64,000 bases of DNA from Ascidiella aspersa. Lineage: Eukaryota. Location: positions 24,056,001 to 24,120,000 of the forward strand of contig OZ004614.1 of the NCBI GenBank assembly GCA_963924565.1. The letters run 5' to 3'. The first letter of the stretch is position 1. Every line of letters begins with the position of its first letter. The position numbers were made by a program, and so were the translations under genes. The notes below the pieces were generated by a model, which was given only the letters and a program-made list of their open reading frames with translations, did not search any database and was not told the DNA's origin. This document shows positions 8,500 to 58,900 of the stretch, in pieces.

Positions 8500-8627
8500 T
8501 CGCACCACGTTCCAATGCACAATCTCCTTCTACCTCCGAAAAACCTCCGTCGTCTTTTACCCGCTTCTGTCGCCGACAGCAGAAGACAAGTCATCAAAAG
8601 CACGACCAAAAGCAGCCTAGTGTTCAT
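8500..8627 (-). CDS. Peptide precursor 'b' first coding exon (no own downstream exons)
   Basis: MNTRLLLVVLLMTCLLLSATEA-GKRRRRFFGGRRRLCIGTWC-GA|GTAAGT. Upstream TTTTCAG acceptor and phase-2 donor are intact; it is followed directly by the upstream module of gene a. Confidence 0.7.
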
Positions 8628-19459: not shown

Positions 19460-22400
19460 CTAGTAAGCTCTCACGTACACTGATTGGCCAACAGCAGCGT
19501 TACCAATCCCAAACTGCTCGTATGCTGTGTCTTCACTTGCAGCAATCCTTGAGACGTTGTAAGCTTGACCAGGCGACTCGCCATTGGCTGATACGTAGGC
19601 AACAGGAATGACGTAATCACTGTCGTCAGACGGATGGTTGGTGACGTTATAGCTGGGATGAGCAGCAAAGCTAGTGTTGACGTAGTTGTTGCATTGTCCT
19701 CGAGATTGATCTTCAGCGTTGATGGACTTAGGGTCGTGACCTAGAAAAAAATAAAGCGTTGAAAAAAAAATAAAATATTCTTAGGCACAAAATTCTATTT
19801 GATGCACATGAAAATTCTTCAAATGACAAGACATATTTTGTTAATATCAGACACCAAGATGTTTGTAGTATATTTACCTGCTTGGGGTGGAGAACGATTG
19901 TCACTTTTCCGTTTTTCAAGCTTTGTTAAAATTTGGTTTCTGAATGAAAAAAGCACAAATATATTCACTTATATATTTAGCAAACACACAAATATATTTC
20001 ACAAAATGGCTGTCGGGGCTTACAATACCCACCTCTTGACGTAAACAAGAACGGCCACTCCAATTAGTATTATTACGGCGCAAGAAACTCCTATTGGTGT
20101 AGCAAGGCTGAGACTAGAAACAGACTGATTTTCTGAAATTAAAATACTGTTCGCTATCCTGTTTGTATATTTATGTTTAAAAGTCTTAACTTATGATGTG
20201 ATTCAAATTATCAGTATACGCGAAACTTGGGGCAACTTTACAAAAGAGCTTAAAGTTGTACATTACGTATAAGCTGAATATAACAATAAAGTTGCCTTGC
20301 GTAAATATAAATTTACAAAGCAACATCCACACTTTTATATGTGCCAGTATTTCATAAAAACATTGTAGAGTCTAGCATGGTTTACTAAAAACATTTGAAT
20401 GAAGTCACCTATTGGCAGATAACATACGCCATTCGATGCAAGAATTGTATTTCTGCACAATGACGTAATTGGGTGAAAATCTGACGTCACCGTGTCTCCC
20501 TTGTTCAACGTGACGTCATGAGTCAGTGTAATGAAAGATGTCAGTGTTATTTCGGAGGTTGTGGTTTTGTTGTTTTTGCTGGTTCTCTTAATTTTCAACT
20601 AGATACAAACGAAGATTTCAGAAAAATATACTTGGGAAAATCAATAATTCAAATGACATACCTTTGCACTTGTTATAACTGAAACAGAGGTCGACGGAAT
20701 TGTGATTTTAATTTGGCAGATTTTGTTTTGAAGGGTAAGTTTAGAAACGATTCCTGCAAAAACGTTTGAAGTTGATCCAGAAACAGTTGGCGTTTGGGGG
20801 ACTTTCCAAATATCAGGAAACAGCTTAATCTAAATTATATTGTTTTAATTGGAAAATGTAAACCAAAGAATCCTAACTAGTTTTTTTTTTAAATAAGGAA
20901 AATTAATGATTTTGAACTTACTTGAATCTTGTAATCTTCATTTCCAGGCAGGGTCGGAAATTCAGTGGAGTAAACATAGTTTGCAGAAGCCGTTGTTTTG
21001 TAATTTTTCACGATGTAAGTAAGCTTGTCATAACTTTGTGCAATCAGCTGAAAGTTGAAATCCCGGGAATATTTTGTTTCGTCAATCCACTTCACAATTA
21101 TTTTGTCGTGGTGGCACTTGGTAGCTTCAGTAAAACGAACAACTAAAACATAGAAAAGACAATTATTGTTACCAAAAAACATTATGATAATGGAAACGCA
21201 AAAAGCTAAAATTTCTGCTTATTTTGTAAACTAGAGTATTATTTTTCACTAATACTCGTTTGGTTGGTAAACTAGATTATTACATAATACTTACTGGGAA
21301 AAACACAGAGAGTGGTTAATAGAGCATTGCAATTCTTGATTTGTGATGTTCCGTTAGCAAATGAAGGACATTTGTCCGTTTCTAAAGTTGCATTCTCATT
21401 ACCTGAATTAAAGAGAAGATGTAATTAATTTAGCCTTCATTTACTAAAGTGGACAAATGTGGTAAAATTACTTTGTGTCCAAGCTGCAAACTTTGCAAGA
21501 GAGCTTCCGTTGAGATATTCCGACGACGGTAACTTGCCTCCGCGGTTCTTACAGTGGAGTTTGGCATCCGTGTATTTTCTGCTCGTGTTGTAACTGACGT
21601 AAAACTGTCCATTGTCGAACAGTAAATCTGAGGAAACAGTATTCTAAATAAAGTAACATACCCAGCATATGGTTTTAAACTATTATTTGTGCATTTTTTG
21701 CGGACCTAAAACGATAACCCATACAAAATGTCGTGCGAAATTACTGTAATTGTATATTTTCTCCGTGTACAGTATTTTGGCTGTAAACTCACATTACAAT
21801 ATTGCAATGTTTCACCAAAAAAAAACACTAAAGAATTACAAACGTTGCATAGGCCACAAAAAAGTGTTGTTACACAGAAAATAAAACACAGTTTATTACC
21901 TTGGTTAATCATAGGAAAAATATTCCCTGTAGCACCGAATTCATTTCGTGCCGAACACTTTACAGTCGCGTTGGCGCCAAATATCGCGGACGCTTCTATT
22001 GTTAGTTGTGACGTCACTGTTTTGATTGTACTGTGGATTGAGACGTAGGTTGGTGACGCGTCGCTGATGATTGTGACGTTTTGGTCGTTGATTGTCCAGT
22101 GAAAAAAGGTCGACTGGTCGGCGGCAAACGTACAATTCAACGACTGTGATTGGCTGAATTCTGCACCTGGTGATGACGCGTTAAGAAACCTTGGGGCAAC
22201 TGAAATGTTCAAAAATCGCAACCTTATTTAATAAAATTAAACCAGAAAGTGTGTCAAACATTTGCCCAAACATGCATTCACAATCTGGGCCCCGAAGATC
22301 GCCGGTTCGAACCCCCGATTCCCTGGCTTAGCAGGCGTTGAGTAACTTAGGTTTAGCTTCAAATAAACAAAGTTGCAAATTTAGTTAGGCTAAAAACATA

Positions 22401-25400
22401 TGTCTAAGCAGGAACTTCACGGCATGAAGAGAAAACATATGTTGATGAAATATATTATATTTTATTTCTACAATAATGTGAAGGATTTACAATCGAAATA
22501 TATTCGGTCATAAAAAATATTTTCATTTAGCAAATCGCTATTGATCCGTAAGCATTAAAATGTAGTTCCGCAATGGCTTGGATTATTTATTTAAACGGGT
22601 CTTTATACATTGTTTCTTCAACAAAGTGTAAACCATTAAAATATTTTGTTATGTTTCTTTGGGCTCTTACCTCTCACAACTAATGTTTTTGTTATTGCGG
22701 TTAGTATGCCGTCGCCCACTCTGTTGCTTGCATGGCAAACGTAATATCCACCGTCCGCTGTTGAATGAGTTGCTTTGAATGTAATAACAGCAACAGTCTT
22801 GTAGATCATCGTTTGAAGTATAGTCTGATATACATTAGCATCACTGCTTGCCGATACATTTTGTGAAGCTCTGTAAGTAAATTCAAAATATGCACACGAT
22901 TGTCTTATGTACTGGATAACATATTCAAAAGTTCAGAACATCACAATTGTAACATTCCACACGTGCTGTTTCGACACCAGAACTGTATAAAGCACAATAC
23001 CAAGAGGAATACTTTGACCAAGAAGCACTTAATTTTATTGAGCCATTTCAGGATTTTAGGCATCAACCAAAATGTATTAAAATCGTGTTTTTTTACAGTT
23101 CTTACAAACAGTGCTGTGGAGTCGGGGCCGGACTCGGGACTCGAGTAAGATTATACTTGGTAGCTCATTTGCAAGTTTGAAACCGATAAAGCCGTACACT
23201 GGAAACCGTAAGGGCGGAAAAGCATAGAGCGGAACATATTAAAACCACAGTATGTGGGTTGGTGGTACGCATGACTCTCCTTTGAAAATTGATGCATATC
23301 TACATTATTTTAAATATGGGGAGGGTGAATACTGTTTGTGCCGGTCACAGTACTCGATGGATTCGGTTAATTTGACCGGAGTAGAATTTGGGACGCGGAC
23401 TTTGCTTCTTTTAAACCGTAGTGAAATTTTTTTAATCTATCTTCAACATGATCAATTGCGTTTAATTTATAAATAGCGCCCGATTAAAACACGGCATTTT
23501 TGCTCACTTTGTCCAGTAAACTTCTGGCGTTGGAAAGCCGTACGACGTGCAGTTGATTTGTGGCTGTTGATCATCTTTGAGAGTAGCTGTTGCCGACGAA
23601 AGAGATATGTTGGCCTTCGCTAAAAATAACGATGAATCCTGTTAACGAGTGCAACTTTCCTTTTTGCTACTTTGTCCCAATTAATAACGCATACCTTGCA
23701 GTTGAAAGGTGGTTTGAACAGCATTAGCATTGTCGTTGTTGTTGCTTGCTGTGCATTTGTAAACTCCAACGTGTTCGATGCTTGCTGCGTTAAACTGGAG
23801 ACGAACAATCTGACGGTCATTTGGATTGATGATCGTCGTCATTTGATGTATATGAGATGCCGGATTGGAGCTGACAGTTTGAGCGTTTCTGTGAAAAACA
23901 AATATTTACAATTCTTGCAACAGCAGTATTTTATTTTTAATTTTTTAATAAATAATTACATGCTCCATGCGACTGTTGGTGCCCGCCATCCATAAGACAC
24001 GCAATCCACATGGAAACTAGCTGGAAACATTTGGATCCTCCAAGGTGATGATGGGGAAAGTGAAATGTTAGGTCCAACTGAAAATATTTCAAGTGTTTAA
24101 AAATTACATCATAAGGCATTGACGAATTATTGTTTAAAAAGTTTTTACATCAATAAAATAATCCAGTGGTCGGCAAACAGTGGGCCGCAGAGCCATTCTA
24201 AGTGGGCCGCGAGGTCAATTTGAACGCAAAATTTTTCGCGCGTCACGCGTATATTCTTCGTTTTATACTATGTTTCACATTATTATATGGCAATGTTTTG
24301 GCAATCAAGGCGCCGTGTAATATTCCAACTTAAAAACAAGTATCCTGAATCTGCCTCTGTTTTCGTAGTGGTTTCACGCAGTGGGCCTTTTATATCTCTG
24401 AAAAGAGTACTTTGGGCCGTGACAAAAAAAGTTTCCCGACCACTGATATAATCATTAATTGTACACCATGATGCTACAGTAAAAATATTTTAAAGCTGTA
24501 ACGATGGTAATGCAATTAGCTTCTTACTTTTTCTACTTCTTACGATTTTTACACTTATGAAGTATGCCATGAATACAGTATTTCTTGATATTTAATTGTA
24601 TCAATACCCTATACTTACTTAATATTTGCAGAACAGTAAACTTCTCTTTTCCCCCGTTTTGAGCGGTGCAATTGTATCTTCCTCCCACTTCAACCATTGC
24701 AATTGGAATGTGGAGTGTTGCAGTTGATTTGTATTTCGCAACTTCAGTCAAATTAGTTTGATAATACGGATCGTTGTTGTTGGAAGAAACCCCCACATCG
24801 TTTGTTCTAAATTTATTAGCGTCGATATATTTAGTTTCATTGAGACACACCAACGCTAATAAACCGAAACCAACCTCTTCCGAAATACGTTAGGCATGGG
24901 ATTACCATAACTGGTACACGTTGATGTAATCGATTTATCGCCATAATTCGCGGTGATTGCGTTCGGTGTTGATAAAGTCATGTTCGGCTGCACTGCAAAA
25001 TTGTTTACATAGGATTTGACAGAAAACAAAAGACATCCGTGAAACTAACGAGCACATAATTTAGCTTCAGTACCTAATGACAATTAAATGCACATACGAT
25101 TTTAAATTAGTAGAAATTTATGTACAAATCAATATTATTCCATTTGTAACTTAGTAAAATTGATTTGCTAAATATAAGCCCAGTGGTCGGCAAACTTAAT
25201 TTGTCGCCACCCAAACTGATCACAAAGTTACGTCATAAGACAATTAACTCTAAACACCTGTTGTTTGGAGCGCGGATATGGAGCTTATCCCAGCCTAATT
25301 GCGCGTCACACGAAAAAAAGTCATTAATCGTTTTAAATTGGCCAAACGTTATTAAAAAGGATATGTAACCCATGAAACACATAGCAATGCATTCGAATAC

Positions 25401-28400
25401 TTCTCAAAATAACGCAGTTTATAGTCCAACTCAGGGATGGCCAGCCCGCGACCAGATATTCTCACTTTCAGTAGCCTTTTTTAAAACAATTGTTTCGACT
25501 ATCACGTGTAGAACGCGCAGTATTTGATGTAGGCCCAATCTTATGTATAAGGCTATACCGGTAATCGAGCCTAGTGTCGCATTTCAACATCCATCAAACT
25601 CTTGTTCACCCATCATTGTTAAGCACGATGTGTGTTTCTGCGGACTGTTTTAAGAAAATATATCAGCCCGGAGGTGTCGTACCATGGCGTGTAAACTCAA
25701 TTTTTCGCGCTTTGCGCGATAAGGCCGACATTTACTTAAATATTTGCACACGAGTTCACTCTCGAAGAACGGGTGTTTATAAGTTAAGTTGTTTTATGAC
25801 GTTACGATATGACGTAAATTATGACGTTACCCCTTCAGTTTGATAGGTTGTGCAAGTGGCAATACGGTCCTTTCAGTTAAAGGCTGGTCTTCCCTAATCT
25901 AACACGAATTCGACTTTGTAGCGTTCAAAAGTTCCACGGCGCAACTTCCCCGCAGTAAGCATATGCTTATGGACTGAATATATATATATAAGCACGAAGG
26001 AAAATATATTTATACTGTTAATTTGGCTAAGGGTACAATTTGGAAATCCATCACCTGGGGGCCCTATGATGCAAGTATGAGCCTAAATGAAAATTCTTAC
26101 CAACGCCATTAATAAAACATGATGAATGTACGGTACAGCTATCACGCATCCCACAACTTCGTGATAAATTGAAATAATAAACGGTTGGTCGCGCTCCACT
26201 AAATATGGCTCGAAGATCCACTTTTAGTCTGCGGCCAACAGTCTGTCTCCAACTGACTTAAAACCTTAATTGTTATAAATTGCGCAATAAAAATAAGCCC
26301 GTCACCTGCAACAGTTAACGTTCTTGTTTGTTCGCCCCCAGCTGAGTTTGCTGCAACTTTACAAACATAACTTCCACCATCATGCACATTCACATGTTTG
26401 ATGTGTAGGGTTCGTCTCACGTAATACCCACTTGAAGATGTGGATTGGTAAACGTGGTGGGTTGTGTCGGTAGAAACTAAAGAGTTACCCCTAAACCAAA
26501 GTAGAATAATTATAAAATATTAACATTGAGAAAGCAAACAAACCCTGAAACTGTATACATTAACGTATTGTATCAACTGTTGAGGGTGCTACACGCACAA
26601 GGTGTCGTATTTAAAAAAAAATGAACAGCGTTTTTTTTTTGAACCAATGCAAAAATGATTCAAATAAAAAATAACATTTGCGTAGAATTAAAAGATATAA
26701 TTTTTGGGTTCAATGACCTTATTCCCTCATGCCAATCAGGAAAAGTTTGAACACATTTTGTGAAATAAAACTAAGCTACAAGAATTAATTTCGTACACTT
26801 ATTGCGCACATAACTTTGTCAAATTGCTGAGCGTTTGGCCTTGTTAAAAACTCTGAGCGTTAAAAAACGCTGAACACAACCACGTTCCCTTTGGCTGCAC
26901 GGCGGCGTGTAGTAAACGCACTATGTTCGGAGAGAAAAAAAAAACGTTTTAGGACCTAAATTAATCAAATGGACTTTTGGCAGTAATACTGAATATATGT
27001 GTCAATCACAAACGTGGGGGTTCTGTCCGTAGAAACTGATGACCTACTCTAAATTCAAATATAATATATATAAATTAATGTTGAGATGGTAAACATAACC
27101 TTAAACTGGATACACATACGCACTATAATAACCATAGAGGGTGCTACACGCAAAGGGTTTTAACGCTTTCGGCGAACTGACCTACATGATGCTAATTTTG
27201 CAAACTAAATGCGCTGGTAACTTGGCCAGAGCGAAGGGCGTTTAGCACACAGTTAGAAACTCAGAGCATCTAATATCGCCCTGCACACCCACTTACGGCG
27301 CTTATGGCTGCGCACTATTTTGGGAGAATCGTTAACCTTAAATAACAAAATTATACGCAGTCAAACGGACTTTTGGCAGTATTACTTAATATATGTGTCA
27401 ATCCCAAACATACAATATAATTACAGACCTCATCCAATCAACTTGTGGTGTTGGGTTTCCTCTCGATTCGCAAACAACTTGTTGTGTTGTTCCATGCGCA
27501 AGGTCAATAGTTGTGGGTGAAATTGTTAGCGTTGCCGGTACTGAAACCGGAAAATAATAAATTGAAAGCCTCTGAGTGAGATTAGTCGTCGTTACAAAGG
27601 CAAATTTCTAAAGATGTCAAAGACAATGCACATATAAAACGTGGTCGCTAGAACAGAAAATTAAAATATACCTATTAGCTTGTCGCTCACATAGAACTGT
27701 AAATTTTAAATTAAAAAAGGAAAATTATGCGATACATTACTTGCGTGGCTTCTTCAATGTATAACCAGTGCTTTGCACTTAGAAGTTCTAAGTTAGAACC
27801 AAGGCTGGGGAGCCGGAGCTGGAGCCCGGAGCCCGGAGCTAAGCATTTTCTCTGGAGCCAGAGCCGGAGCCGGAGCCATTGTTATTAGTTTTGTGGAGCT
27901 GGAGCCGGAGCCGGAGCCATTGTTATTATTTTTGTGGAGCTGGAGCCGGTGCCGGAGCCATTTTTATTATTTTTGTGGAGCTGGAGCCGGAGCCGAAACC
28001 ATTTTTATTATTATTGTGGAGCTGGAGCCAGAGCCGGAGCCCTTTTTATTATTTTTGTGGAGCTGGAGCCATTTTTCAATTTGTGCTGCTAAAGCTAAGA
28101 AATTATATTTTGTTCCATCTCCAACGTCAGTTAGCCAAAAGCAATTTTTAAAACTTGCCATTGAATAAGTGACTGGTGGCACCGGAGCTGGAGCCGGAGT
28201 CATTGTGTGTGTGTTTGATGGCTCTGGAGCTGGAGATGAAGCTGGAGCCGGAGCCAAAGGATATGAGTTTTACTACTCCGGATCTGGAGCCGGAGCCAAA
28301 GGATATGAGTTTTACGACTCCTGAGCTGGAGCCGGAGCTAATGCTATTTTACGGTGGCTCCCCAGCCCTGGTTAGAACTGTCAAGGCGATATTGGTAATG

Positions 28401-31400
28401 TAGTATCGGAGGCTTCTAATTTACTAAGCTTATCGAAATTGAAGCAACTGTATGGCATTTAATAAGCATTTTGTGCCACTAGACATAATATTTTTGGTCT
28501 CTACTTACCAAGGATAGTTAGAGTCTTGCTTTTCACGCCACTTCCAGCCCAGTTGGTCGTTTTACATTCGTACAAACCCCCGTTTCCAGCGTCGTTGTTG
28601 ATTCTAATGTAAAGATCAGAGTTGCCAGTTGATCCTCCGCTCGTTGTAGTTGAAACTTGATAAACTACAGTTGATGAACTGGAAGATATCTCAGCGTTGT
28701 TCCTTAAAAGTAAAAAAAAAGTTTGTGAAATTCATTCTGTAATAAAGTGCGACTATAGTAAATCCGTTCTTCATTTTAAAATCTTATGCTTTATTATGCC
28801 ACGATTTGGTCATCACTTTGTTTTAGTATACCTTTTTGTATTGTAAGGATTGCTTTTATTCAAGATATTTAAAATTGTATTTGAAAGTAAGACATATTTT
28901 GTTTTTCTAAAATGCTTGTTTATCATTTTTTTTATTTAACTATAACATACTTTAGTTCATACGCTATAAAACAACCACACATTGAGAACTTATTTTAACC
29001 AGCAAGTAGTTCGTCAAGTTTATAAAACAAACGCAAAAGCGTGAATAAATACACGTTTACATAGTACGTTTAGGTTGAAATAAATGTAAAATAACATCGA
29101 AGTTTTGGGCGAGTTACCCAACTTATTATGGCTCATCGCTTAAACGTAACTAATTACTCGTTTACATTGTACGTTTAATAAGTGTAAAACTAACATCGAT
29201 TTCGGGCGAGTAAATCAGTTTGTTTAGTTTATTGCATTGTCTGTCTCGCATATTCGATTCCATTGTGTCAACAAGATGCAACCAGAAATAAGTAAGATAT
29301 AAACACAGACTTCTAAGTCCATCTTACCTAAACCATCTACACTGAGGCTGGTGATACCCCGAGCATGTGCATTTCTCAACTGTCATTATGTTGATGCCCA
29401 ATGTCCGTGTTGTAGATGTGAGATGCAATGCAGAAGAACCTAAAAGCAAAAATAAATTGTAAACACGAAACTACCCAACAACTTACACAGAACGTATTAC
29501 ACACCAACTATTGATTCACAAAAAATCTTCAAGAATATACGTAGCGGAAAAGTTCCTAAGACAACACGTTCCTATATTTATTTTACAACTTTGAATACAA
29601 TATTGTTTATTTCTATATTAGGAAATATCTAAAAGTAAATTTAATTACCAGCTACAATGTTGACTGTTGCAACGGCAGTACAAGTTCCAGCACTATTTGT
29701 TGCAGTGAACACGAAATCTCCGTTGTGTGACAAGGCGACAGAGTTGATGACGTAAGTAAAGCTCGTCCCAACTAAATTACTTATTACGTTGGTGTTTGTT
29801 CCACCATGGGCAACAACCACGTTAAGAGGTTCCTTGTAAAAGCCAGAGATGGTTCCTGTGAATGTCAAACTGCTTCCCAATGTTGGTGTGCTGGTTGATG
29901 ACGTCACAGCCAAGTTGCGTTCGACTGCGTTGAAAAAGTCAAGAAATTAACCAAAAAAAATACTATTTTGCTATTGGTTATAAAGGTTAATTATTTTTAT
30001 CATACTGTATTGTTTGTTTGTATTGCTATGGTGTCCAATTTACGAAAAGACTGTCTTTCAACTAACGCCGTAAAACCTCATTAATTTTGATCGCAGGGAA
30101 CAAAGCAGTGGCGTAGCCAGCCGAAAAATTTGAAGGGGGGCCAAAAAGTTGGAATTTTCGGTTTGCTTTTACCATTGTATATACACCGTAACGAACACAA
30201 ATAACAATGAAAGTAGTAAAACTACATTAATGTTTAGCAAACGTTATATTAACTACATCGTTTGCGACGTAACAATGCATGACAACTTAAGGTGTGGCAT
30301 GCCTGGGATCGACTGTTGTGGTACTGCTTATAAATGCTAAAAAAAATAAATTATTAAGAGTAAAATATTTATAAAGGCCCCCTGGCTACGCCTATCATTC
30401 AAATTTGCCCTTGCAGAATCAATGGCGTACGAAATTGTGAATCTTAGAAACCATCGATGGGTAAAGTAGCCTATGGTATCATTTCAAATACGAATTTAAA
30501 TTGAACCTGCGCAAACCAATTTTACCCTTATATTTGGATGGCGGCCTATACTTTATTAAGAACCTCCGGCGTATAAAGAAATAAATAGTCTTGCAGAACC
30601 GTCAGTTTATTACTTCTGGAACATCTTAAATCAAGCTAGTAAATTACTTTAAACTAATTGAATATGTTGTTGCTTACAGGCATGGTTTCAATTGTACAAT
30701 TGCCTTTCCGGCAAAATTTTATTAAAGTTTATTTTTTATTCGGTTTAAAATTCGAGTCTACGTTCACACGTCGTCATCCATACTACTAATGAAAAGTGTA
30801 ATAAAACAACTTTCTAACTTTAATAGTTAATGTAGTTCAGTGTTTGTTAACCTTTTTTAAGTCAGGGCACACCCGGCAAGCGAAACGAGTGCGATTTTTT
30901 TTGGTATACGTGCATTTCTTTTAAATTTTTTGCAAGTTTTATTACCTTGCCAAAACTAAAATAAATGTTAACAAATATACGTCCAATACGACGCACGTGG
31001 CAGCCTTCCACGACACAACGGTAAAAAGGCACTGATCTAGTTCACAAGACAGCATCAAAACGTAAACAAACCAGACGTGCAAAGATCATTTGCGCGAAGC
31101 GCGAAAATATTTCGCACTTACTTAGGTAAAAACGTCTAAAGGTATTTGAAATGAACTCGTGTTTAGATTATCAAAGAGGCGGCGGGCCGGATGAGTTACA
31201 TTGGCGGACCGGATCCGGCCCGCGGGCCGTAAGTTGCCGATCCCTGATTTAAACTAATTGCTCATCAAAACTGTTTTATTGTTTTCAAGTACTAATGTTG
31301 TAAAATTACACACCCAACGAAGGTAAAAAGCTGTTTGCCGTAAACTCATCACGCAAAGCATTAGAGGCTCAAACATTCCAAAATAGAATGTTTAACCAAT

Positions 31401-34400
31401 ACTTCCCTCTTAAGTTAGTACAGTTAGACCGATCAGCGCAATTCACCTTGGTATTCGCAAATGTGATAGAATGTTCCAGTACACCCCGCAGCGCCCCACT
31501 TCCAAATGTAAGTATAACTTCCTGGTGACCCGGATTGTGTTCCGAAAAACACCATACATGATCCAAAGCTTGTTGGTCCACTTCCACTTATCCATCCATT
31601 GTATCCTGGTGTTGACCAGGTGCTGCCTGCTTAAAAAGATTGGTCGAAAAATAATTATTTTAAAGTTCGTACGTGTTGTGCAAGCATATAGCTATCGTTT
31701 GTTGTCTGCTTTGTCTAAATTTGTGTTTCTTTTATTTTTGACAGAATTATGTTTATAAAGAGAAAACGTTGACACCCATGAATTCTTACCGCCATCACTT
31801 TCTTATTTTGCTAAGCCAACATAAAAAGAATGGAATGATTGAGAAGGAAACAAAATCCCACTTTTAAAAAGCGAAAAGTTAGCACTAAGGATCATCACAC
31901 TTTTTCGGAGAACTGGAATGCCTGACTAACGAGGGCCGAATATAATTTTGTTCCAACTTCATCAATTTAGTTTTTGTTAATCAAAGAAACTATATGTATA
32001 TTATAGTGTATATTACGTCTTATATGTATATTATTTAATAAAAAATGTCATGAGTTTTATGAAATTGTCGTTCAGTTTTATAGTTCTTTTAAATGGTTTG
32101 AATTTGTGTCCGACAATGGTACAACCGATTAATTTAGTCTTAGATTTATTTTCGCAAAAAGACACGGACATTAAAAGGCCGGCCAACTAACTTTTCAAGT
32201 TGCAAGTTTCCAGCATGTGGTGCATATACATTCTGAGTGTTATATTGCTTTAAACATATAGATCAATACAGACAGCGCCGGCAAAGTCTTTATTGATGCA
32301 GTACGCCTACGGTATTCAGTACGCCTACGGTATAGTATAATGAACCGTCCACAAAGTAAATAAATCAACTACTTTATTCGACATACTTCTATCAACGAAA
32401 CGTCATTCTGGACTTTTGTAATGCACAACCATTACGACAAAATACATATTTCAACATAATATATTTTATCGTGCAAATTTCTCCGTAATAAAACCGATAG
32501 TTGCGACGACCTTAAATGACAAGTTATATGTGAACTTTCGCATAATATTAAACAAATAGCCCCACTACTAGTTATTTTTGTTCAACGTTTCTATATTTTA
32601 CACATTGTACGTTACAGCATTCGGTTTATGTAACCCTTAAAATAGGGTTTTCCACACTTTTTTGGACCACGGACCACTATTTGTGAATCTGTTTTTTCGC
32701 GGACCGCAATACAAAGCAAAAAATAATTAAAACCAAATTTTATATATTTACAAAACTGACAGCATCAATGGGACGAATGAGATTGCTTCTCTCTGCTTAC
32801 ATCATTAATTCATCATAAACTCAAAGCGCAACAAGTAAGATTTACGATATTGGTTAGCAAAAGCTTTCGAAATCGATAAGTTGTGAATAACTGCGGCAAT
32901 TTAATTATTTTTTAAAGAATACACATGCTGTACAACAGGGGTCGGTTAAAACCAAACTCAGAAAGGTCTCTGTGGGCCGCACAAAATGTTAACTAAGAAT
33001 TATGTTATTAAAATGTTAGAACAACTGTTAATCAGGCGGGCTTCGGATATGTTTTTGCACTTAAAATCGTGTTTAGTTACTTTTAAGGAGGCAGTAAAGT
33101 GTTGGCGCAAAGCGGGACAAAAAGGGTTTGTTAGTTTCAAAATTCGAGTCCACACGTCGTTATTCAATATTGAAAAGTGTAATTAAACCATTTTGAGAAA
33201 ACGCGATAACTTAATGGTTAATCGAGTTCAGTGTTTGTTAACATACCGTATTTAAGTCCGTGCGCACCTGGCGAGCGAAGCGAGCGCGATTGTTTTTTGG
33301 GTACACCGGCATTTCTTTCAAATTTCTTGCAAGTTTTTATTACATTTCAAAATAAAAAGTAAAGAATGTATGTCCAATATTTTTGAACACGTTTTCCATT
33401 TGTACGCGACGCACTTTGGCACCTGGCAGTCAGTCTTCCACAGAGCAAGAAGCGCTAATCTAGTTCAAATGACAGTATCATAATATAAACAAACCTTATG
33501 AATAAAGATCGTTAACGCAAAGCGCGAAAAATGTTCGCACTTACAGAGTTGAAATAGTCAAAAAGTATAAGAAATGGACTCGTATCTAGTTTATCAAAGG
33601 ATAAATTACATTCGCGGGCCGGATCCGGCCCACGGGCCAAAGGTTGTCGGCCCCTGCTTTACAACATATAGGTGTAACTTTTTAATATCTTAATTCAATA
33701 CCCTAAATAAAAAATTCAATACCCTAAATAACATGCTCAAACGATAAGTAAAGTTAAAACGTGTAACAATTGTAGGTTGACTTTCTTATGGTAAGATAAT
33801 TACCTGAATAGCTTGAAAATGTCGTTCCGTCTGGCCACTTAAAGTCGTTTACAGTGCGTTCCCCGCCAATGAAGGCATCTGGCAAATGATTTGTTTTAAC
33901 ACTTGCAATAAACAATTTAGGCACAATGTCGATGTTTGTATATACTTACAAACGTTTGAGCCTCCAATCCACCCGTTTCCAACCTTGTTGCTTGCGAGAG
34001 TGCTGAGATGGCTTTGTGTTGCTTCGTCAGGAATACTTGCCAAGTTACCACCTCCATTAATGCAAGCTGTCTTGGCTGTTGCTTGAGTTACTTTGACGCT
34101 CGAAAGCACGAAGTTTCTTCCCTTGCATGTTGCAGCGCCTATAACAGCACATAATGCTCTAAGCTGAATTTGCGTTTATTTTTCCAACCGAATCTAACTA
34201 CAAAAGGTTTTAACGATAATTAAGTTCGACGATTGTCAAAAATGTGATGCCATTTGACAGAACCATGAACAAAATGCGCGAAATACAAAAATCGAAACAC
34301 AGATATTACAATACAATAACAGCATATTGACAGATAAACAAGTGCTCCGCAACCTTTTTCCACTTGCGGCAAACCAAGAGTACTATAACAATACGGCGGC

Positions 34401-34812
34401 ACACTTTATAAAAAAAGCAAATATCCTAGGCTGCTCAGAAGTAACCTTTTACCTAACTTCAAACCATATCCCTAACTTTATCACTAAATCCCCCAATATT
34501 CCAACCATAACTTAATTTTTAACCCCACACATAACCCAACACTAGCCCCAAAGAAGGACAAACAACTCAATGCCAAAACAGCGGCGCACCAACGCCTCCG
34601 AACTAAAGCTCCGGAACGTCGACACCAAAACATCTGATGCAGATCGATGACCCCCGGTCGTCCCATACCCCTTGTTCTACAGTTTTCACTCTGAATTAAA
34701 CTTGCAATGAATACTTCGTAAAATGTTCAAAACTTTGGTAAATAACACAATAATACAAACCTGTTTTGTCGATTCCAACGGCCGTTAACAATATCAAAGA
34801 TAAGATAAACAT
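19460..34812 (-). CDS. Multi-exon type I transmembrane receptor, copy A (SP-CTLD-7xIg-compact CTLD-FN3/FN3-like-TM-Tyr-rich tail), 1296 aa
   Basis: 24 GT-AG exons with compatible phases: 34812-34761 (MFILSLILLTAVGIDKTG signal), 34138-33950, 33878-33804, 31626-31447 (CTLD: ACINGGGNLASI..WIGG..FKWPDGT..C..WKW..C..YHICE), 29924-29649 (Ig1), 29439-29328+28702-28509 (Ig2), 27540-27429+26490-26306 (Ig3), 24992-24875+24806-24619 (Ig4), 24077-23960+23888-23695 (Ig5), 23619-23508+22870-22671 (Ig6), 22199-21900 (Ig7), 21627-21472+21402-21295 (compact CTLD), 21142-20922, 20829-20662, 20598-20409 (FN3/FN3-like), 20132-20033 (TM: PIGVSCAVIILIGVAVLVYV-KR), 19939-19878, 19740-19460 (tail, TAG). Total 3891 nt, open throughout. 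Exons 5-24 and the visible part of exon 4 are matched in copy B. Confidence 0.88.
24164..24445. mobile_element. hAT-type MITE (CAGTGGTCGGCAAAC family)
   Basis: TIR CAGTGGTCGGCAAAC / GTTTCCCGACCACTG, TSD A(A/T)ATAATC; empty in copy B (~58095). Confidence 0.8.
26450..27405 (-). repeat. Intronic tandem duplication carrying a dead 5' fragment of receptor exon 9 (also in copy B ~59780-60735)
   Basis: 26450-27006 resembles 27010-27405 (gagggtgctacacgca at 26582/27137; ggacttttggcagta at 26970/27367). 27048-27010 reads AG|AGTAGGTCATCAGTTTCTACGGACAGAACCCCCACGTTT, similar to the exon 9 start. Confidence 0.7.
27800..28370. mobile_element. hAT-type MITE filled with GGAGC(C/T) minisatellite
   Basis: TIR CAAGGCTGGGGAGCC / GGCTCCCCAGCCCTG, perfect TSD GTTAGAAC; internal GGAGCTGGAGCCGGAGCC arrays; absent from copy B intron. 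Explains the ELEPEP/GAGAG ORFs. Confidence 0.88.
30106..30395. mobile_element. MITE with GGCGTAGCCAG inverted termini
   Basis: cagtggcgtagccag ... ctggctacgcc; absent in copy B intron 4. Confidence 0.6.
32936..33656. mobile_element. hAT-type MITE nested in another MITE in receptor intron 3
   Basis: CAGGGGTCGG / CGGCCCCTG ends, TSD CT(G/T)TACAA; a related truncated copy lies at ~30740-31246. Confidence 0.7.
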
Positions 34813-52941: not shown

Positions 52942-55900
52942 CTAGTAAGCTCTCTCGTACACTGATTGGCCAATAGCAGCGTTACCAATCCCAAACTGCT
53001 CGTATGCTGTGTCTTCACTTGCAGCAATCCTTGAGACGTTGTAAGCTTGACCAGGCGACTCGCCATTGGCTGATACGTAGGCAACAGGAATGACGTAATC
53101 ACTGTCGTCAGACGGATGGTTGGTGACGTTATAGCTGGAATGAGCAGCAAAGCTAGTGTTGACGTAGTTGTTGCATTGTCCTCGAGATTGATCTTCAGCG
53201 TTGATGGACTTAGGGTCGTGACCTAGAAAAAAATAAAGCGTTGAAAAAAATATAAAATATTCTTAGGCACAAGATTTTATTTATACACATGAAAATTCTT
53301 CAAATGACAAGACATATTTTGTTAATATCAGACACCAAGGTGTTCACAGTATATTTACCTGCTTGGGGTGGGGAACGATTGTCACTTTTCCGTTTTTCAA
53401 GCTTTGTCAAAATTTGGTTTCTGAATGAAAAAAGCGCAAAAATATTCACTTATATATTTGACAAAAACACAAATATATTTCACAAAATGGCTGTCGGGGC
53501 TTTACAACACCCACCTCTTGACGTAAACAAGAATGGCCACTCCAATTAGTATTATTACTGCACAAGAAACTCCTATTGGTGTAGCAAGGCTGAGACTAGA
53601 AACAGACTGATTTTCTGAAAATAAAATACTGTTCGCTAGCCTGTTAGTATATTTATGTTTAAAAGTTTTAACTTAAGTTGTGATTCAAATTTTGATTATA
53701 CGCGAAATTTGAGGCAACTTATCAAAAGAGCTTATAGTTGTACATTACGTAAAAGCTGAATATAACAATGAAGTTGCATTGCGTAATTATAGGTTTAAAA
53801 AGCAACATCCACACTTTTATATGAGTCAGTATTTAATAAAGACATTGTGGAGTCTAGCATGATTTACTGTAAAGCATTTAAATTAAGTTTTATAGTCACC
53901 TATTGGCAGGTAACATACGCCATTCGATGGAAGAATTGTATTTCTGCACAATGACGTAATTAGGTGAAAATCTGACGTCACCGTGTCTCCCTCATTCAAC
54001 GTGACGTCATGAGTCAGTGTAGATGAAGGCGTCAGTGTTATTTCGTAAGTTGTAGTTTTGTTGTTTTTGCTGGTTCTTTTAATTTTCAGCTACATACAAA
54101 CAAAGATTTCAGAAAAATATACTTGGGTGAATCAGTAATGCAAATGACATACCTTTGCACTTGTGATAACTGAAACAGACGAAGTTGGAATTGTGATTTT
54201 AATTTGGCATATTTTGTTTTGAAGGGTAAGTTTAGAAGCGATTGCTGCAAACACGTTTGAAGTTGATCCAGAAACCATTGGGGTTTGGGGGACTTTCCAA
54301 ATTTCAGGAAACATCTTGATCTAAATTATATTATTTTAACTATTATAAAGTTTTTTGATTTTTGAAACAATGCAACACACAGTGTCGTAATTAGTTGGCT
54401 AAAAAAAGAACGAAAATGAATGGTGTTAAACTTACTTGAATCTTGTAATCTTCATTACCAGGCAGGTTTCGAAATTCCGTGGAGTGAAAATAGTTTTTAG
54501 AAGCCGTCGTTTTGTAATTTTTTACGATGTTAATTGATTTGTCGGAACTTTGTGCAGTCAGCTGAAATTTGAAATCCCTGGAATATTTTGTTTCATCAAT
54601 CCACTTCACAATTATTTTGTCGCTATGGCACCGAGTAGCTTCAGTAAAACGAACAACTGAAACATAAAAAAGAGAATAATTGTTTCAGCAAACAGTTATG
54701 AAAATGGAAATGCAAAAAACAGTAATTTCCGTTTATTTTGTAAACTAGATTATTACATTATGCTTACTGGCAAAAACACAGAGAGTGGTTGACAGGAAGT
54801 TGCAATTCTTGATTTGTGATGTTCCATTCGCAAATGAAGGGCATTTGTCAGCATCTAAAGTTGCATTCTCAGTACCTGAGTTAAAAATAAGCAATTAATT
54901 GAGGTTCATTTACTAAAGTCAAACAATTTGGTTAAATTACTTTGGGTCCAAACCGCCAATTTTGAAAGCGAGCTTCCGTTAAGATATTCCGACGACGGTA
55001 ACTTGCCTCCGTGGTTCTTACAGTGTAGTGAGGCATCCGAGTATTTTCTACTCGTGTTATAGCTGACGTAAAACAGTCCATTGTCGAACCGCAAATCTGT
55101 GAAAACCGAATTTTTTAGGTTTGTGTAAAATACTCGCTTGTATGGGTTAGAATTTAATTGTAAACACGGTCGCACTTGCGCTTTCTCGCTGTTTATAATA
55201 AACCAGAGTGGCCTTACATATACCCAGCATATTGTTTTAAACTATTATTTGTTGATTTTTTGCGTACCTAAAAGGATAAATACGAAATCGTGCGAAATTC
55301 CTATAATTGTATAATTTCTCCGTGTACAGTTTTTTGGGTGTAAACTCACCGTTACAATATTGCAATGTTACAACAAAAAATACTGAGGAATCACAAACGT
55401 TGCATAGGCCACAAAAAAGTGTTGTTACACAGAAAATAAAATATATTTATTACCTTGGTTAATCATAGCAAAAATATTCTCTGTAGTACCGACTTCATTT
55501 TGTGCCGAACACTTTACAGTCGCGTTGGCGCCAAATATCGCGGAAGCTTCTATTGTTAGTGACGTCACTGTGTCGAGGGACCTGTGGATTGTGACGTAGG
55601 TTGGCGACGCGACGCTGTTGATTGTAACGTTTTGGTCGTTGATTGTCCAATGAAAGGTTGTCGACTGGTCGGCGGCAAACGTACAATTCAACGTCTGTGA
55701 TTGGCTGAATTCTGCACCTGGTGATGACGCGTTAAGAAACCTTGGGGCAACTGAAATGTTCAAAAATCGCAACCTTATTAAAAAAAAATTAAACCAGCAG
55801 GTGTGTCAAACATTTGCTCAAACATACATTCATAATCTGGGCCCCAAAGGTCGCCGGTTAGAACCTACGAGTCCCTGGCGTTAAGTTACTTAAGTTTAGC

Positions 55901-58900
55901 TTGAAATAAAAAAAAATAAACAACAAATAGTATAGCTATGAAAACACATCTAAGGAGGAACTTCTCAACATGAAGGGAAAACATATGTTGATGATATAAA
56001 TTATTGAATTTAGATTTTTTTCAAGAATAACGTAAAGGATTCACAATAGAAATATATCAGGTCATTGAAAAATATTTTTCTGTAGCAAATTGTTAACAAT
56101 CCGTAGTCATTAAAATGTAGTGTAGCAATGGCGTAAAATATTTGTTAAATGGGTCTTTATACTTTGTTTATTCATTCAACAAGGTTTACCCATAATGATA
56201 TATATTTGATATATTTGTATCAATCTTACCTCTAACTAGCAGTGTCTTTTCTACTGGGGTTATTATGCCGTCGCCCACTCTGTTGCTTGCATGACAAACG
56301 TAACTTCCACCGTCCGCTGGTGAATAAGTTGATTTAAATGTGATGACAGCAACAGTCTTGTAGATCATCTCATGAAATACTCTCTGATATACTTTAGCAT
56401 CACTGCTTGTCGATACATTTTGTAAAGCTCTGTAGGAGAATTAAACATTACACACGCCCACGGCATATATAGTTGACAATGCTCAGTAATATACTCAATA
56501 GTCCAAAGCCATAGCAGTGAAGTCGGTTAAAGAAACAAGTCTGACTCGCTTGTCCCGAGTTCGACCCCGGCCTAATGTGCAATTTCGTCGAGTCCCGTGT
56601 CCGACTCCCACTGGAGCATTTCTTTTATTTGAGAACATTTGGTGGATATTCAGCAGTTCACTATATGTCATGAAATTCTTCCACCCACAATACATTATTG
56701 GAAGTTCTTCCACCATATACTATTCCGTCTTTAGAATTTATAGTTTGTGGCCTTGACCGTTTGGAAATTTAGTAAAGCGCATGCGCACGTCGGACTCGGC
56801 ACTCTGGTAGTTGTAGGAAGTCTTATCGAGTTCTTTTTTGAAATTGTTTTTGAATTTAAGATTTTTTATTAAGCAGAACTTAACTTTTAAAATAGTCATT
56901 AGACGTTTTCAAGCATCAAACAAAATCCTTTAAATCATCTTGTTTACTTTAGAAGCAGTGCCGTGAGGTCGGGCCCAGATTCAGGACTCCAGTAAGACTA
57001 TACTTCCTAGTCCATCGCACGCCTGCTCATTTGCACGTTTGAAACCGATAAGGCCGTACTCTGGAAATCGTAAAGGCGGAACAGCAAATAAAGGTATATT
57101 TTAAAACCACGGTATGTGGGTTGGTGGTACGCACGACTCTCCTTTGTGAAATGATGCACATCTACATTATTTGATATATGGGTACGCTGAATACATGTTC
57201 GGCTGGTCACAGTCTTCGATGGATTCTGTTAATTTGACCGGAGTCGAATTTTGGACGCGGACTGTGCTTTTTTTAACCGTAGTGAAATTTATTTTTAATC
57301 TTATCATTCACATGATCAATTGCGTTTAATTTAAATATATAGCGCCTGATTAAAACAGGGCATTTTTGCTCACTTTGTCCAGTAAACTCCTGGCGTTGGA
57401 AAGCCGTACGATGTGCAGTTGATTTGTTGCTGTTGGGCATCATTTAAGGAAGTTGTTGAGGACGAAAGAAATATGTTGGCCTTCGCTAAGAATATGATAA
57501 ATCATATTAGCGAGTGCAACTTACCTTTTTGCTACTGTGTCCCAATTTATAACGCATACCTTGCAGTTGAAATGTGGTATGAACAGCATTAACGTTGTCG
57601 TTGTTATTGCTTGCTGTGCATTTGTAAACTCCAACTTGTTCGATGCTTGATGCGGTAAATTGGAGACGACCGACCTGTTTGTTATTTGGATCGTTGATTG
57701 TCGTAATTTGATGTATATGAGATGCCGTATTTGAGCCGACAGTTTGAGTGTTTCTGTGGAAAACAAATAATTACAATTTTTGCAACAACCATATTTAAGT
57801 TAAATATATAATTACCTGCTCCAGGTAACTGTTGGTCTGCGCCATCCATAAGACACGCAATCCACATGGAAACTAGCTGGAAACATTGCGATCTTCCAAG
57901 TCGATGATGGGGAAAGTGAAACGTTGGCTCTAACTGAAAATATTTCAAATGTTTAACTTGCCAATACTTGGAACATTGTCAACTGCGAACTTCGATGAAA
58001 TTTTTAATGTTTGAACTACAAAACAGTTGATTTATAAACATCACAACAGGCATTAACGAATAACAGTTTGGTGTTTAGTGCGTTTTCGCATCAATATTAT
58101 AATCAATCAATAACCGTATTGCAGTATATCATAATGCTACAGCAAAAACATTTTTAAGCTGTAAAGATGGTTATGCAATTAACTTCTCACATTTTCTACT
58201 GCTTACGATTTTCACACGAAGTATGCCAGGAATACAGTATTTCTTGGTATTTAATATTATCAGTACGGTACGATGACTTACTTAACATTACCAGAACAGT
58301 AAACTTCACTTTTCCTCCGTTTTGGGCGGTGCAATTGTATCTTCCTCCCACTTCAACCATTGCAATTGGAATGTGAAGTGTTGCAGTTGATTTGTATTTA
58401 GTAACTTCAGTCAAATTAGTTTGATAATACGGAGCGTTGTTGTTGGAAGAAATAATAACGTTCGATCTAAATGTAATTGCGTCAGTATATTTGGTTTCAT
58501 AATACAGACCAACACTAGCAAACTGAAACCAACCTCTTCCAATATACGTTGGGCGTGGGATAACCGTAACTGGTGCAGCTTGATTTTATCGATTTATCGC
58601 CATAATTCGCGATGATTACGCTTGTTGTTGATAATGTCATGTTCGGTTGCACTGCAAAGTTGTTTAAAGAGGAATTGACATAAAACAAAGGACATGCGTA
58701 AAACTAAAGATTTTCTTAAATATGGTATAGGTTTGATCAGAACGTCTTTTTAACATTGCATCTTTTACAGGACTTTTATCAAAGTAGTTGTTGAGCCCAA
58801 CATTGCTTTTGTGCGTTTGCTTTGTATTCACAAAGCCGATTCTCTTTTTTCGTATTTAGGTGGGAAGAAAAGCCATGTTATGTTAACCAATTTTTTAAAT

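Follow-up and report, generated by a model that had tools for sequence, protein, structure and literature searches.

A large cell-surface receptor predicted from lectin-like and antibody-like domains, with a tyrosine-rich inner tail, is encoded by an intact 24-exon gene of Ascidiella aspersa, and this gene is one member of a tandemly arrayed, apparently lineage-specific family of some 40-50 loci, part of which carries a tyrosine phosphatase domain instead of the tail. The gene lies on the minus strand within the window, by which we mean the whole analysed stretch of 64,000 nucleotides (contig OZ004614.1, positions 24,056,001 to 24,120,000). The predicted product reads in the order short cleaved signal peptide, C-type lectin-like domain (CTLD1) without the sugar/Ca motifs, seven Ig domains, a putative compact second CTLD (CTLD2), a putative FN3, an unassigned juxtamembrane module, a transmembrane helix and a tail with 8 tyrosines. 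The family looks like a recognition system, although this function is inferred from sequence alone.

Gene structure

The exon borders were derived by eye from frame-wise translations and then tested with a script that used coordinates only. There are 24 exons, 23 of 23 introns begin with GT and end with AG, no exon contains an in-frame stop and no split codon is a stop. The total of 3888 nt corresponds to 1296 codons, exactly the length and limits given in the earlier note, and the observation made there, of an open lectin-immunoglobulin receptor gene with a mirrored paralog, holds. The intron phases are also as described in it. The five split Ig domains (exon pairs 6/7, 8/9, 10/11, 12/13 and 14/15) each carry a phase-2 intron, which lies two to three codons after the C-strand Trp in 4 of 5, Ig4 having Phe there. 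All other junctions from exon 1 to exon 19, including those inside the two CTLDs, are phase 1. Two corrections have to be made: the second CTLD is a short, compact form of about 88 residues, and the FN3 is followed by about 100 residues of unassigned beta-rich sequence (the rest of exon 20 plus exon 21).

The paralog in the same window (copy B; the gene described here is copy A) mirrors all 20 coding pieces that can lie inside the window, and its exons 1-4 were found just beyond the window end. In copy B, 19 of 19 acceptors and 19 of 19 donors that the alignments reached are AG and GT at the homologous positions, and splice sites are kept at homologous places in four copies other than copy A. 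Chance cannot give this, since the same 24 exons occur in the same order in five intact neighbouring copies. It should be noted, however, that RNA support is thin: only 33 reads were placed from 6% of one run, 18 of them on a repeat, a handful fall in exons 24, 19 and 13/14, and no splice joint was seen.

Features of the receptor gene (copy A) and of its paralog in the window, with the supporting observations. All features are on the minus strand. Percentages are identities to neighbouring tandem copies, of which c0 is a rearranged one.
Position	Feature	Observations
34761..34812	Exon 1: ATG (at 34812) and 17-codon hydrophobic signal peptide, phase-1 donor	GT donor; 15 of 17 residues kept in copy B, 88-94% in four other copies
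33950..34138	Exon 2: first part of CTLD1 (first strand, helix-1 Cys, GG.LAS, WIGG)	Pfam Lectin_C E 1e-3, 20.3 bits, under the 22.6 cut-off; family profile against PDB sequences: 7 of 7 hits are CTLD proteins, best 1e-5
33804..33878	Exon 3: middle of CTLD1 (W.DG stretch)	71-96% in five copies
31447..31626	Exon 4: last part of CTLD1 with WKWGAA (31504-31487); no EPN/QPD, WGA in place of WND	Family profile: 3 of 3 PDB hits are mosquito C-type lectins, aligned on W.W.D..C....F.CE, E 0.065-0.4; 48 genome matches
29649..29924	Exon 5: Ig1, whole domain in one exon, lacking the canonical Cys pair	Pfam I-set E 0.0019; family profile: 4 of 5 PDB hits are titin Ig tandems, best 1.3e-6; 47 genome matches
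29328..29439	Exon 6: first half of Ig2, ends phase 2 after C.W	72-78% in paralogs
28509..28702	Exon 7: second half of Ig2	Pfam Ig_2 E 0.011; cross-matches to the Ig3 and Ig6 second halves
27429..27540	Exon 8: first half of Ig3	Pfam Ig_3 E 3.3e-4, I-set 1.5e-3
26306..26490	Exon 9: second half of Ig3	Pfam I-set E 6.3e-6, 26.6 bits, over the 23.7 cut-off
24875..24992	Exon 10: first half of Ig4 (Phe in place of the C-strand Trp)	Cross-matches to the first halves of Ig5 and Ig6
24619..24806	Exon 11: second half of Ig4	Pfam I-set E 0.011; the 68-nt intron 10 was placed from phase and the AG
23960..24077	Exon 12: first half of Ig5	Read directly; cross-matches among Ig halves
23695..23888	Exon 13: second half of Ig5	Pfam Ig_3 0.0032, ig 0.0045; trace of RNA reads in bin 23600-23799
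23508..23619	Exon 14: first half of Ig6	Pfam Ig_3 0.0059
22671..22870	Exon 15: second half of Ig6	No Pfam Ig hit; matches the Ig2 second half of the paralog at 31%, 3e-5; D.G.Y.C pattern read directly
21900..22199	Exon 16: Ig7, whole domain in one exon	AlphaFold2 on 17 family sequences: pLDDT 69, pTM 0.63; Foldseek against PDB: 4 hits at E<=1e-3, all listed rows Ig domains (DIP, Trk, Unc5, DSCAM, titin, PTP-delta), TMq up to 0.73; 42 genome matches
21472..21627	Exon 17: first part of the putative compact CTLD2 (strand 1, helix-1 Cys, GG.LP)	Family profile (19 sequences): 9 of 10 PDB hits are CTLD proteins (PLA2R 0.0017, DEC-205, intimin, CD93, collectin-11), all on the same stretch, E 0.0017-0.6; Pfam Intimin_C 0.035
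21295..21402	Exon 18: last part of the putative CTLD2 (three Cys, C...NC......LCVF), long loop region missing	Cys pattern read by eye, conserved in 12 diverged family copies; no database hit of its own
20922..21142	Exon 19: putative FN3, strands A to F	AlphaFold2: pLDDT 74, six strands; Foldseek against PDB: listed rows almost all FN3 domains or FN3 binders, TMq about 0.6, E 0.026-0.2, none <=1e-3; no Pfam fn3 hit, no PDB sequence hit
20662..20829	Exon 20: probable last FN3 strand plus start of the unassigned beta-rich module	Phase 0 on both sides; 88-95% in the four other intact copies, 75% in c0
20409..20598	Exon 21: juxtamembrane module with a conserved Cys-10 residues-Cys loop	Family alignment; PDB profile search gave only noise; 29 genome matches
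20033..20132	Exon 22: transmembrane helix (about 20094-20038) and basic stop-transfer residues	Read directly; 84-97% in the four other intact copies, 68% in c0
19878..19939	Exon 23: 62-nt basic cytoplasmic exon, needed to keep the frame between exons 22 and 24	85-100% in four copies
19460..19740	Exon 24: 92-codon tail with 8 Tyr, followed by TAG (19462-19460)	NY[VA]N, DYV.P and YEQ[FL] in 24 of 24 family tails, SVY..[AVT] at the end in 23 of 24; a few RNA reads at 19400-19799; 26 genome matches
52945..64000	Copy B (paralog): exons 24 to 4 inside the window, exons 3 to 1 just beyond its end

Domain composition

Each domain was assigned exon by exon. CTLD1 shows the conserved Cys framework of its superfamily, with three Cys in the pattern C....W.W....C.....CE in exon 4. 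The motifs of classical Ca-dependent sugar-binding C-type lectins are, however, absent. None of 6 aligned copies has EPN/QPD at the expected place, and five of 6 read WGD where WND is expected, this copy reading WGA. The Ig domains belong to the I-set-like type: Pfam Ig families were found on 9 of 12 Ig exons, and the halves of the split domains cross-match each other. The scores for the second CTLD and for the FN3 are weak (hmmsearch E>=0.0017 and Foldseek E>=0.026, respectively). No Sushi hit was obtained on any of the 20 coding stretches scanned. N-glycan sequons are unevenly distributed, there being 0 in exons 1-9 against 16 in exons 10-21, which speaks for a sugar-free outer tip.

A tandem gene family

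Six tandem copies lie within 194 kb, one of which, c0, is rearranged, with stops. Genome-wide, single exons match 26-48 places, nearly all on one chromosome; besides the numbers in the table, the CTLD2 search gave 30 matches and the FN3 search 31. The earlier note had thus understated the case in describing one gene with a paralog. Whole 33-kb units, including intergenic DNA, are duplicated at 82-95%.

The pooled dN/dS is 0.19-0.60 in all six regions and in all pairs with measurable divergence (dS up to 0.44), which shows that the copies are kept as coding genes. Only one exon pair exceeds 1 (Ig1, copy A against neighbouring copy c1, 1.16), and there is thus no sign of the diversifying selection expected of an arms-race receptor.

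No relative turned up outside this genome in two single-exon database searches or in the literature, and the domain order (CTLD, seven Ig, compact CTLD, FN3) did not turn up in these or in literature searches. The lineage specificity proposed in the earlier note is supported as far as two single-exon searches can show.

Two kinds of inner ends

The tail of about 115 residues contains no enzyme domain. None of the 150 listed matches to the tyrosine phosphatase domain PF00102 lies in the window, and the phosphatase exons of a sibling gene found nothing in the window or in the 194 kb around it (C8 23.996-24.190 Mb) at E<=1e-3. Four tyrosine motifs are almost invariant across the family: Y-x-N, D-Y-V-x-P, Y-E-Q-F/L and a terminal S-V-Y-x-R/K-x. 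Canonical ITIM, ITSM or ITAM motifs are not present in this copy. The ITIM pattern [ILVS]xYxx[ILV] gave no hit in the last 95 residues of this copy or of any of the 12 close copies and c0, although it is present at the C-terminus of 11 of 12 diverged-type tails, and the ITAM pattern (Yxx[LI] x6-12 Yxx[LI]) occurs in 0 of 24 tails.

At least 15 sibling genes end in a phosphatase domain instead: PF00102 exons follow family ectodomain exons, on the same strand and in order, at 15 loci, four of which lie inside this array. One of them keeps the WPD loop and the Cys-X5-Arg signature and is apparently active, as judged from sequence. The assignment of genes to the tail or phosphatase type rests on exon order on the chromosome, not on transcripts. 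The outer Ig1 domains of the two types intermix. A tree of Ig1 from 26 genes needs 6 changes of end type, 0 of 200 bootstrap trees put each type in one clade, and copy B pairs with a phosphatase gene. This tree is short (89 columns), its bootstrap had not settled, and well-supported branches force only 2 changes.

Interpretation

The reading we consider somewhat more likely than not is that copy A encodes a type I membrane receptor of a large, tandemly arrayed family. Its outer CTLD lacks the calcium/sugar residues and therefore more likely binds protein or an unusual ligand. In this view, ligand binding at the sugar-free outer tip would cluster the receptor, a cytoplasmic Src-type kinase would phosphorylate the tail, and SH2 proteins would then dock, a Grb2 type on Y-x-N and a Crk or PLC-gamma type on Y-V-x-P. 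The Grb2 SH2 consensus pYxNx and the CrkII SH2 consensus pYxx(P/L) are given in PMC10279719; the partners are read from mammalian consensus motifs only. The phosphatase-ended siblings, with closely related outer domains, could oppose that signal, and the family would then behave as paired receptors with opposite inner ends. What the analysis itself establishes is the gene structure, the domain make-up (with the weak scores mentioned above for CTLD2 and FN3), the family size, the selective constraint, the motif conservation and the two kinds of ends, whereas the ligand, the phosphorylation, the SH2 partners and any immune or self/non-self role are inferred.

The interpretation offered in the earlier note is partly supported. 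Its architecture, the lack of the classical sugar/Ca motifs and the non-catalytic Tyr-rich tail are borne out, but nothing shows the immune, allorecognition or adhesion role that it inferred: expression is barely seen and polymorphism could not be told apart from paralogs.

It is possible, although less likely, that the protein is a cell-adhesion or cell-identity molecule of the neural-CAM kind, used in development or tissue organisation, whose many copies would give a surface code as with Dscam or protocadherins, and not an immune or self/non-self receptor. The Ig7 model matches adhesion-type I-set domains best (DIP, Dscam, Kirrel, SYG-2, Unc5, PTP-delta), Ig1 matches titin I-set domains, Ig domains split into two exons occur in neural CAM genes, the siblings are receptor tyrosine phosphatases, a class with Ig/FN3 ectodomains used in axon guidance, and a dN/dS below 1 fits conserved binding partners. 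However, about 40-50 tandem, partly rearranged copies with mosaic exchange are more typical of fast-turnover recognition families, no ortholog was detected elsewhere in the two single-exon searches, and an outer CTLD head and signalling tyrosine motifs are unusual for classical CAMs.

It is unlikely that the tail-type genes are only decoys or regulators of the phosphatase-type receptors, competing for the same ligand or forming heterodimers, with the tyrosines as substrates that occupy the sibling phosphatase. The shared outer domains, the apparently active sibling and the acidic-flanked tyrosines of the tail, such as D-x-D-Y, would fit. But the conservation of four distinct motifs in 23-24 of 24 tails, including Y-x-N and Y-x-x-P docking types, suggests specific partners rather than bulk substrate, and the membrane-near modules of the two types are only 26-34% identical, which argues against simple heterodimer mimicry. 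That the copy is a non-functional by-product of recent segmental duplication, open by chance or youth, is very unlikely despite the duplicated 33-kb units, the rearranged c0 and the very few RNA reads, given 1296 open codons across 24 exons with all splice sites intact, the pooled dN/dS and the splice sites kept in five copies.

Tunicates are the closest living relatives of vertebrates, and how they tell self, non-self and microbes apart without antibodies or MHC is an open question, for which this family, with its two opposite inner ends and visibly exchanged outer domains, gives a concrete, testable candidate. A more far-reaching possibility, which for the present is doubtful, is that it is a chordate paired-receptor system of a new kind, in which one pool of variable lectin-plus-Ig recognition tips is shuffled by recombination between genes and mounted either on a phosphotyrosine docking tail or on a built-in active tyrosine phosphatase. 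A cell would then read the same ligand as "go" or "stop" according to which genes it expresses, and this would be an innate self/non-self or microbe recognition system that arose independently of vertebrate NK receptors and of the Botryllus Fester genes. Even if the role turns out to be adhesion, the pairing of a tyrosine-motif tail with a built-in phosphatase on shared ectodomains is an unusual way to build opposing receptors.

Comparison with known systems

Arthropod contactin, named in the earlier note, has an N-terminal CTLD, six Ig domains, four FN3 and a GPI anchor, and thus shares the order of an outer CTLD, a run of I-set Ig domains and then FN3. On direct reading the architectures differ: the multi-copy, tandem genes described here have seven Ig domains, a putative second compact CTLD, a single putative FN3, a membrane helix and a tyrosine-motif tail.

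CD22 and other Siglecs have a similar working plan, with a lectin-type head, a long Ig rod (seven Ig domains in CD22) and a tail with several tyrosines. The CD22 tail has six tyrosines, three of them in ITIMs, and CD22 collaborates with Grb2 (PMC5302901). The head in the present family is a CTLD rather than a V-set Ig, this copy has no ITIM, and no sequence relation is shown.

The Fester family and Fester co-receptors of Botryllus (PMC12582321) are large, linked multigene families of Ig-superfamily receptors in a tunicate, in which genes with different signalling ends sit side by side. Their tails carry ITIM, hemITAM and other conserved tyrosine motifs, including a C-terminal [A/D]VYxxV type that recalls the terminal SVY motif found here. 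Those proteins have one to three Ig domains plus a Sushi domain, and no CTLD, FN3 or phosphatase partner, although the supplementary tables of that study might list further architectures.

Type IIa receptor tyrosine phosphatases (LAR, PTP-delta, PTP-sigma) combine Ig plus FN3 ectodomains on a membrane-spanning protein, and PTP-delta Ig domains are among the structural matches of the Ig7 model. The gene described here has no PTP domain, its siblings seem to have one PTP domain rather than two, and CTLDs are not known as part of RPTP ectodomains.

The paired activating/inhibitory NK-cell receptor families (KIR, Ly49), which are mentioned in PMC12582321, are clustered multigene families in which near-identical outer domains are mounted on opposite signalling ends and are exchanged between genes. 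There is no homology, and in the present family some sibling genes, not this one, have a phosphatase built into the receptor instead of being recruited through an ITIM, which may be the opposing arm.

Gene structure

On the minus strand, frame-wise translation of the stretch reveals a chain of open stretches with lectin-like, Ig-like, hydrophobic and tyrosine-rich content. Exon borders were placed by eye and then confirmed by a script that held coordinates only: there are 24 exons, 23 of 23 introns are GT..AG, no exon contains an in-frame stop, no split codon is a stop, and the total is 3888 nt = 1296 codons. The earlier note had claimed a fully open 24-exon model, and its limits and length were thus reached independently. 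The five split Ig domains each carry a phase-2 intron two to three codons after the C-strand Trp (in Ig4 there is a Phe at this place), and all other junctions from exon 1 to exon 19 are phase 1, which is as the note had described them.

A 60-codon ORF inside intron 1, which mimics a signal anchor by a basic stretch followed by a hydrophobic one, was first taken for exon 1. However, no donor of the right phase fits and the ORF is not kept in paralog B, the neighboring copy in the window, whereas of the short signal-peptide exon 15 of 17 residues are kept there. The ORF is therefore probably not coding. Natural open read-through across the short in-frame introns 17, 20 and 13 was looked for in five copies (in copy c4 only in part), but every in-frame span had 2–3 stops. 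The coordinates of these and other features are collected in the table.

Features of the gene, its surroundings and the family loci
Feature	Position	Strand	Remarks
Window	C8:24,056,001-24,120,000		C8 is a contig of the 308.6-Mb assembly
Start codon ATG of the gene (copy A)	window 34812	minus	signal-peptide exon
Stop codon TAG of the gene	window 19462-19460	minus	follows exon 24
WKWGAA in exon 4	window 31504-31487	minus	WGA where WND is expected
60-codon ORF	window 34487-34666	minus	inside intron 1
Minisatellites	window 27845-28070 and 28240-28338		intron 7; period 41 and 42 (5.5 and 2.4 copies); open in several frames and thus resembling coding Ala/Pro/Gly/Ser repeats in an ORF list
Very high-copy repeat	window about 24164-24197		intron 11; DNA-contig depth 7,000-16,800 against a few hundred elsewhere
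Intergenic DNA	window 1-19400 and 34900-52900		of neighboring units; duplicated in long blocks of 82-95% identity; internal repeats
Copy c0	C8 23,997,940-24,014,761		rearranged; exons 12-19 occur twice; stops in one exon 19 and in exon 9; D-Y-V-x-P block of the tail four times in tandem
Extra copies of the first half of exon 2	C8 24,051,817-24,051,909 and 24,150,344-24,150,448		short, stop-bearing; just upstream of the real exon 2 in copies c1 and c3
Phosphatase-type sibling within the array	C8 24,199,200-24,203,200		WPD loop and catalytic Cys-X5-Arg signature kept; signature split by an intron right after the Cys
Phosphatase-ended loci	C8 24.20, 24.35, 24.43 and 24.50 Mb		four loci, inside this array
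Phosphatase-ended loci	C8 8.24-8.48 Mb		eight loci
Phosphatase-ended loci	C8 near 9.9-10.0 Mb		two loci
Phosphatase-ended locus	C3		one locus, on contig C3
Tyrosine-phosphatase exon arrays	C6 about 28-32.6 Mb		contig C6; dense tandem arrays with most of the 150 listed matches

Rfam gave no hit over the window. The intergenic parts hold no ORF of 125 codons or more, and no partner gene was recognized there in an inspection that did not proceed exon by exon.

Domain composition

All domain assignments rest on searches and folds of single exons, which should be thought of in the case of domains that span exons, namely CTLD1, CTLD2, the FN3 and the juxtamembrane module. For CTLD1 (exons 2–4), Pfam Lectin_C gives E 1e-3 on exon 2 alone, and family profiles hit only CTLD proteins in the PDB, 7 of 7 for exon 2 (best 1e-5) and 3 of 3 for exon 4. 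The note had claimed that EPN/QPD and WND are lacking. Indeed, the sugar/Ca triplets are absent in 6 of 6 copies.

Ig1 (exon 5) lacks the Cys pair, but its profile matches titin Ig tandems at 1.3e-6. Of the ten half-domain exons of Ig2 to Ig6, seven give Pfam Ig hits, one of them over the curated cut-off, and the halves also cross-match one another. The AlphaFold2 model of Ig7 (exon 16), with a pLDDT of 69, matches only Ig domains of the adhesion-molecule I-set kind, 4 of them at E<=1e-3, although a PDB sequence profile gave only 2 hits with E 0.28 and 0.74, which is not usable.

The second lectin-like domain, CTLD2 (exons 17–18), comprises only about 88 residues. A profile of 19 sequences of exon 17 hits CTLD proteins in 9 of 10 cases, all on the helix-1 and GG.L stretch, but with E values of only 0.0017–0.6, and exon 18 keeps a three-Cys pattern that fits the end of a CTLD with the long loop deleted. 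This assignment is considered probable, not proven. Exon 19, the putative FN3, is predicted to fold as six strands with a pLDDT of 74, and the Foldseek rows listed are almost all FN3 domains, but none reaches E 1e-3, and a PDB sequence profile returned 0 hits. No domain could be assigned to exons 20–21, the PDB profile of exon 21 giving 19 hits, all of them noise. Exon 22 holds a 19-residue hydrophobic helix followed by basic residues. N-glycan sequons are unevenly distributed: there are 0 in exons 1–9 (signal peptide, CTLD1 and Ig1–3) and 16 in exons 10–21 (Ig4 to exon 21), which gives, as predicted from the sequence, a bare outer tip on a glycosylated stalk.

A multigene family

The gene is not one of a pair but belongs to a family. 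In 194 kb around the window, six copies lie head to tail on the minus strand, each with the 24 exons in the same order. Five of them (A, B, c1, c3 and c4) are intact and one (c0) is rearranged. Splice dinucleotides are kept at every homologous border that the alignments reached: in c1 at 18 of 18 acceptors and 20 of 20 donors, in B at 19 of 19 and 19 of 19, in c3 at 19 of 19 and 20 of 20, and in c4 at 18 of 18 and 19 of 19. In the genome as a whole the tail exon matches 26 places, 11 of them 90–100% identical and all within C8 24.04–24.46 Mb, and exon 4 of CTLD1 matches 48 places, of which 45 are on C8 and 4 carry a stop. Ig1 matches 47 places, Ig7 42, CTLD2 30, FN3 31, and exon 21 29.

Nei-Gojobori estimates between copies give a pooled dN/dS of 0.19–0.60 in every region wherever divergence is measurable, and the copies are therefore maintained as coding genes. 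There is no pooled sign of diversifying selection, only Ig1 between A and c1 exceeding 1, at 1.16. The near-identity of the tails is not only due to purifying selection, however, since synonymous divergence is 0.00–0.08 in exon 24 against 0.2–0.66 in the outer exons. Blocks of complete identity differ from pair to pair: c1 equals c3 in exons 10–20, and B equals c4 in exons 15–21. We infer from this repeated gene conversion or unequal exchange.

The cytoplasmic tail

The tail of this copy has 8 Tyr in 92 residues and no canonical ITIM, ITSM or ITAM. Across 24 family tails, NY[VA]N, DYV.P and YEQ[FL] are present in 24 of 24 and a terminal SVY..[AVT] in 23 of 24. In 11 of the 12 diverged-type tails the terminal motif is a canonical ITIM. 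Y-x-N is the Grb2 SH2 consensus and Y-x-x-P the CrkII SH2 consensus (PMC10279719). Y-V-I-P is also close to the preferred site of a PLC-gamma SH2 domain. The tail thus looks like a phosphotyrosine docking platform, an inference from motifs alone.

Siblings with a phosphatase end

At 15 loci, PF00102 exons follow ectodomain exons of the family, on the same strand and in order. The one phosphatase end that was read, in a sibling within this array, keeps the WPD loop and the Cys-X5-Arg signature. Most of the tyrosine-phosphatase exon matches lie elsewhere, on C6, and represent a second, larger phosphatase expansion. The note had set transcripts with a different C-terminus, for example one continuing into a phosphatase domain, as a finding that would overturn its reading. 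No phosphatase exon was found in the window or in the 194 kb around it; as read from the genomic sequence, this gene therefore ends in its tail, and the note's reading is not overturned on this point.

The outer domains of phosphatase-type genes are as close to copy A as those of its tail-type neighbors. For example, Ig1 is 77–85% identical in 11 of the 13 phosphatase-type genes (60–61% in the two near 9.9–10.0 Mb) against 74–89% in the tail-type genes, and exon 4 of CTLD1 is 67–78% identical against 70–74%. Likeness falls toward the membrane, being 56–73% in Ig7, 32–38% in CTLD2, 26–30% in the FN3 and 28–34% in exon 21. In a maximum-likelihood tree of 26 Ig1 exons (14 tail-type and 12 phosphatase-type, chosen from the 47 matches) the two types are intermixed: the tree needs 6 changes of type, 0 of 200 bootstrap trees make each type one clade, and copy B pairs with the phosphatase gene at 24.376 Mb (support 96/87). 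It should be noted, however, that the alignment has only 89 columns, that the bootstrap had not settled, and that strongly supported branches force only 2 changes.

Transcripts and sequence variation

Reads of one RNA run of the same species label, of which 6% was read, were aligned to window positions 19200–25199. Of the 33 reads placed, 18 sit with loose ends on both sides on the high-copy repeat in intron 11, which is probably a transcribed mobile element, and a few fall in exons 24, 19 and 13/14, all in one orientation. No splice joint reached the listing threshold. These data are too thin to confirm or deny the model. DNA contigs of two other samples, aligned to the same interval, show clusters of differences from the reference in exon 21 (six places) and in exons 16, 20 and 24. 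At the likeness threshold of 95% paralogs can be aligned as well, and the differences may therefore be alleles or paralogs, so that no conclusion on polymorphism is drawn.

Interpretation and comparison with known systems

The observation made in the earlier note is confirmed and extended. Its interpretation is supported only in part: it is right on architecture and, as far as tested, on lineage specificity, but it is too narrow on scale, and the immune, allorecognition or adhesion role that it proposed remains an inference. What the analysis itself provides is an independent exon model, fold and profile tests of the doubtful domains, estimates of selection, a census of the tail motifs, and a tree showing that the outer tips, which would serve in recognition, are shared between the two signaling types, whereas exchange between copies and docking on the tail are only inferred from these data, and any function of the receptor is a proposal.

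With respect to lineage specificity, a search of 1.84 billion representative proteins with the Ig7 exon gave only 2 hits at E<=1e-3, both of them bacterial repeat proteins (Flg_new, PKD) and therefore noise, and a word-indexed search with the Ig1 exon gave nothing. Both are single-exon queries, and the latter sees only proteins of 50–160 residues, so that full-length relatives are not excluded. In the literature, as far as open-access full text without supplements can show, neither this architecture nor a lectin-headed receptor phosphatase in ascidians was found to be described, and PMC514892 says nothing on CTLD-Ig proteins of tunicates. The nearest concept is that of the Botryllus Fester and co-receptor families, which are composed of Ig plus Sushi domains, with tails carrying ITIM, hemITAM and other tyrosine motifs (PMC12582321).
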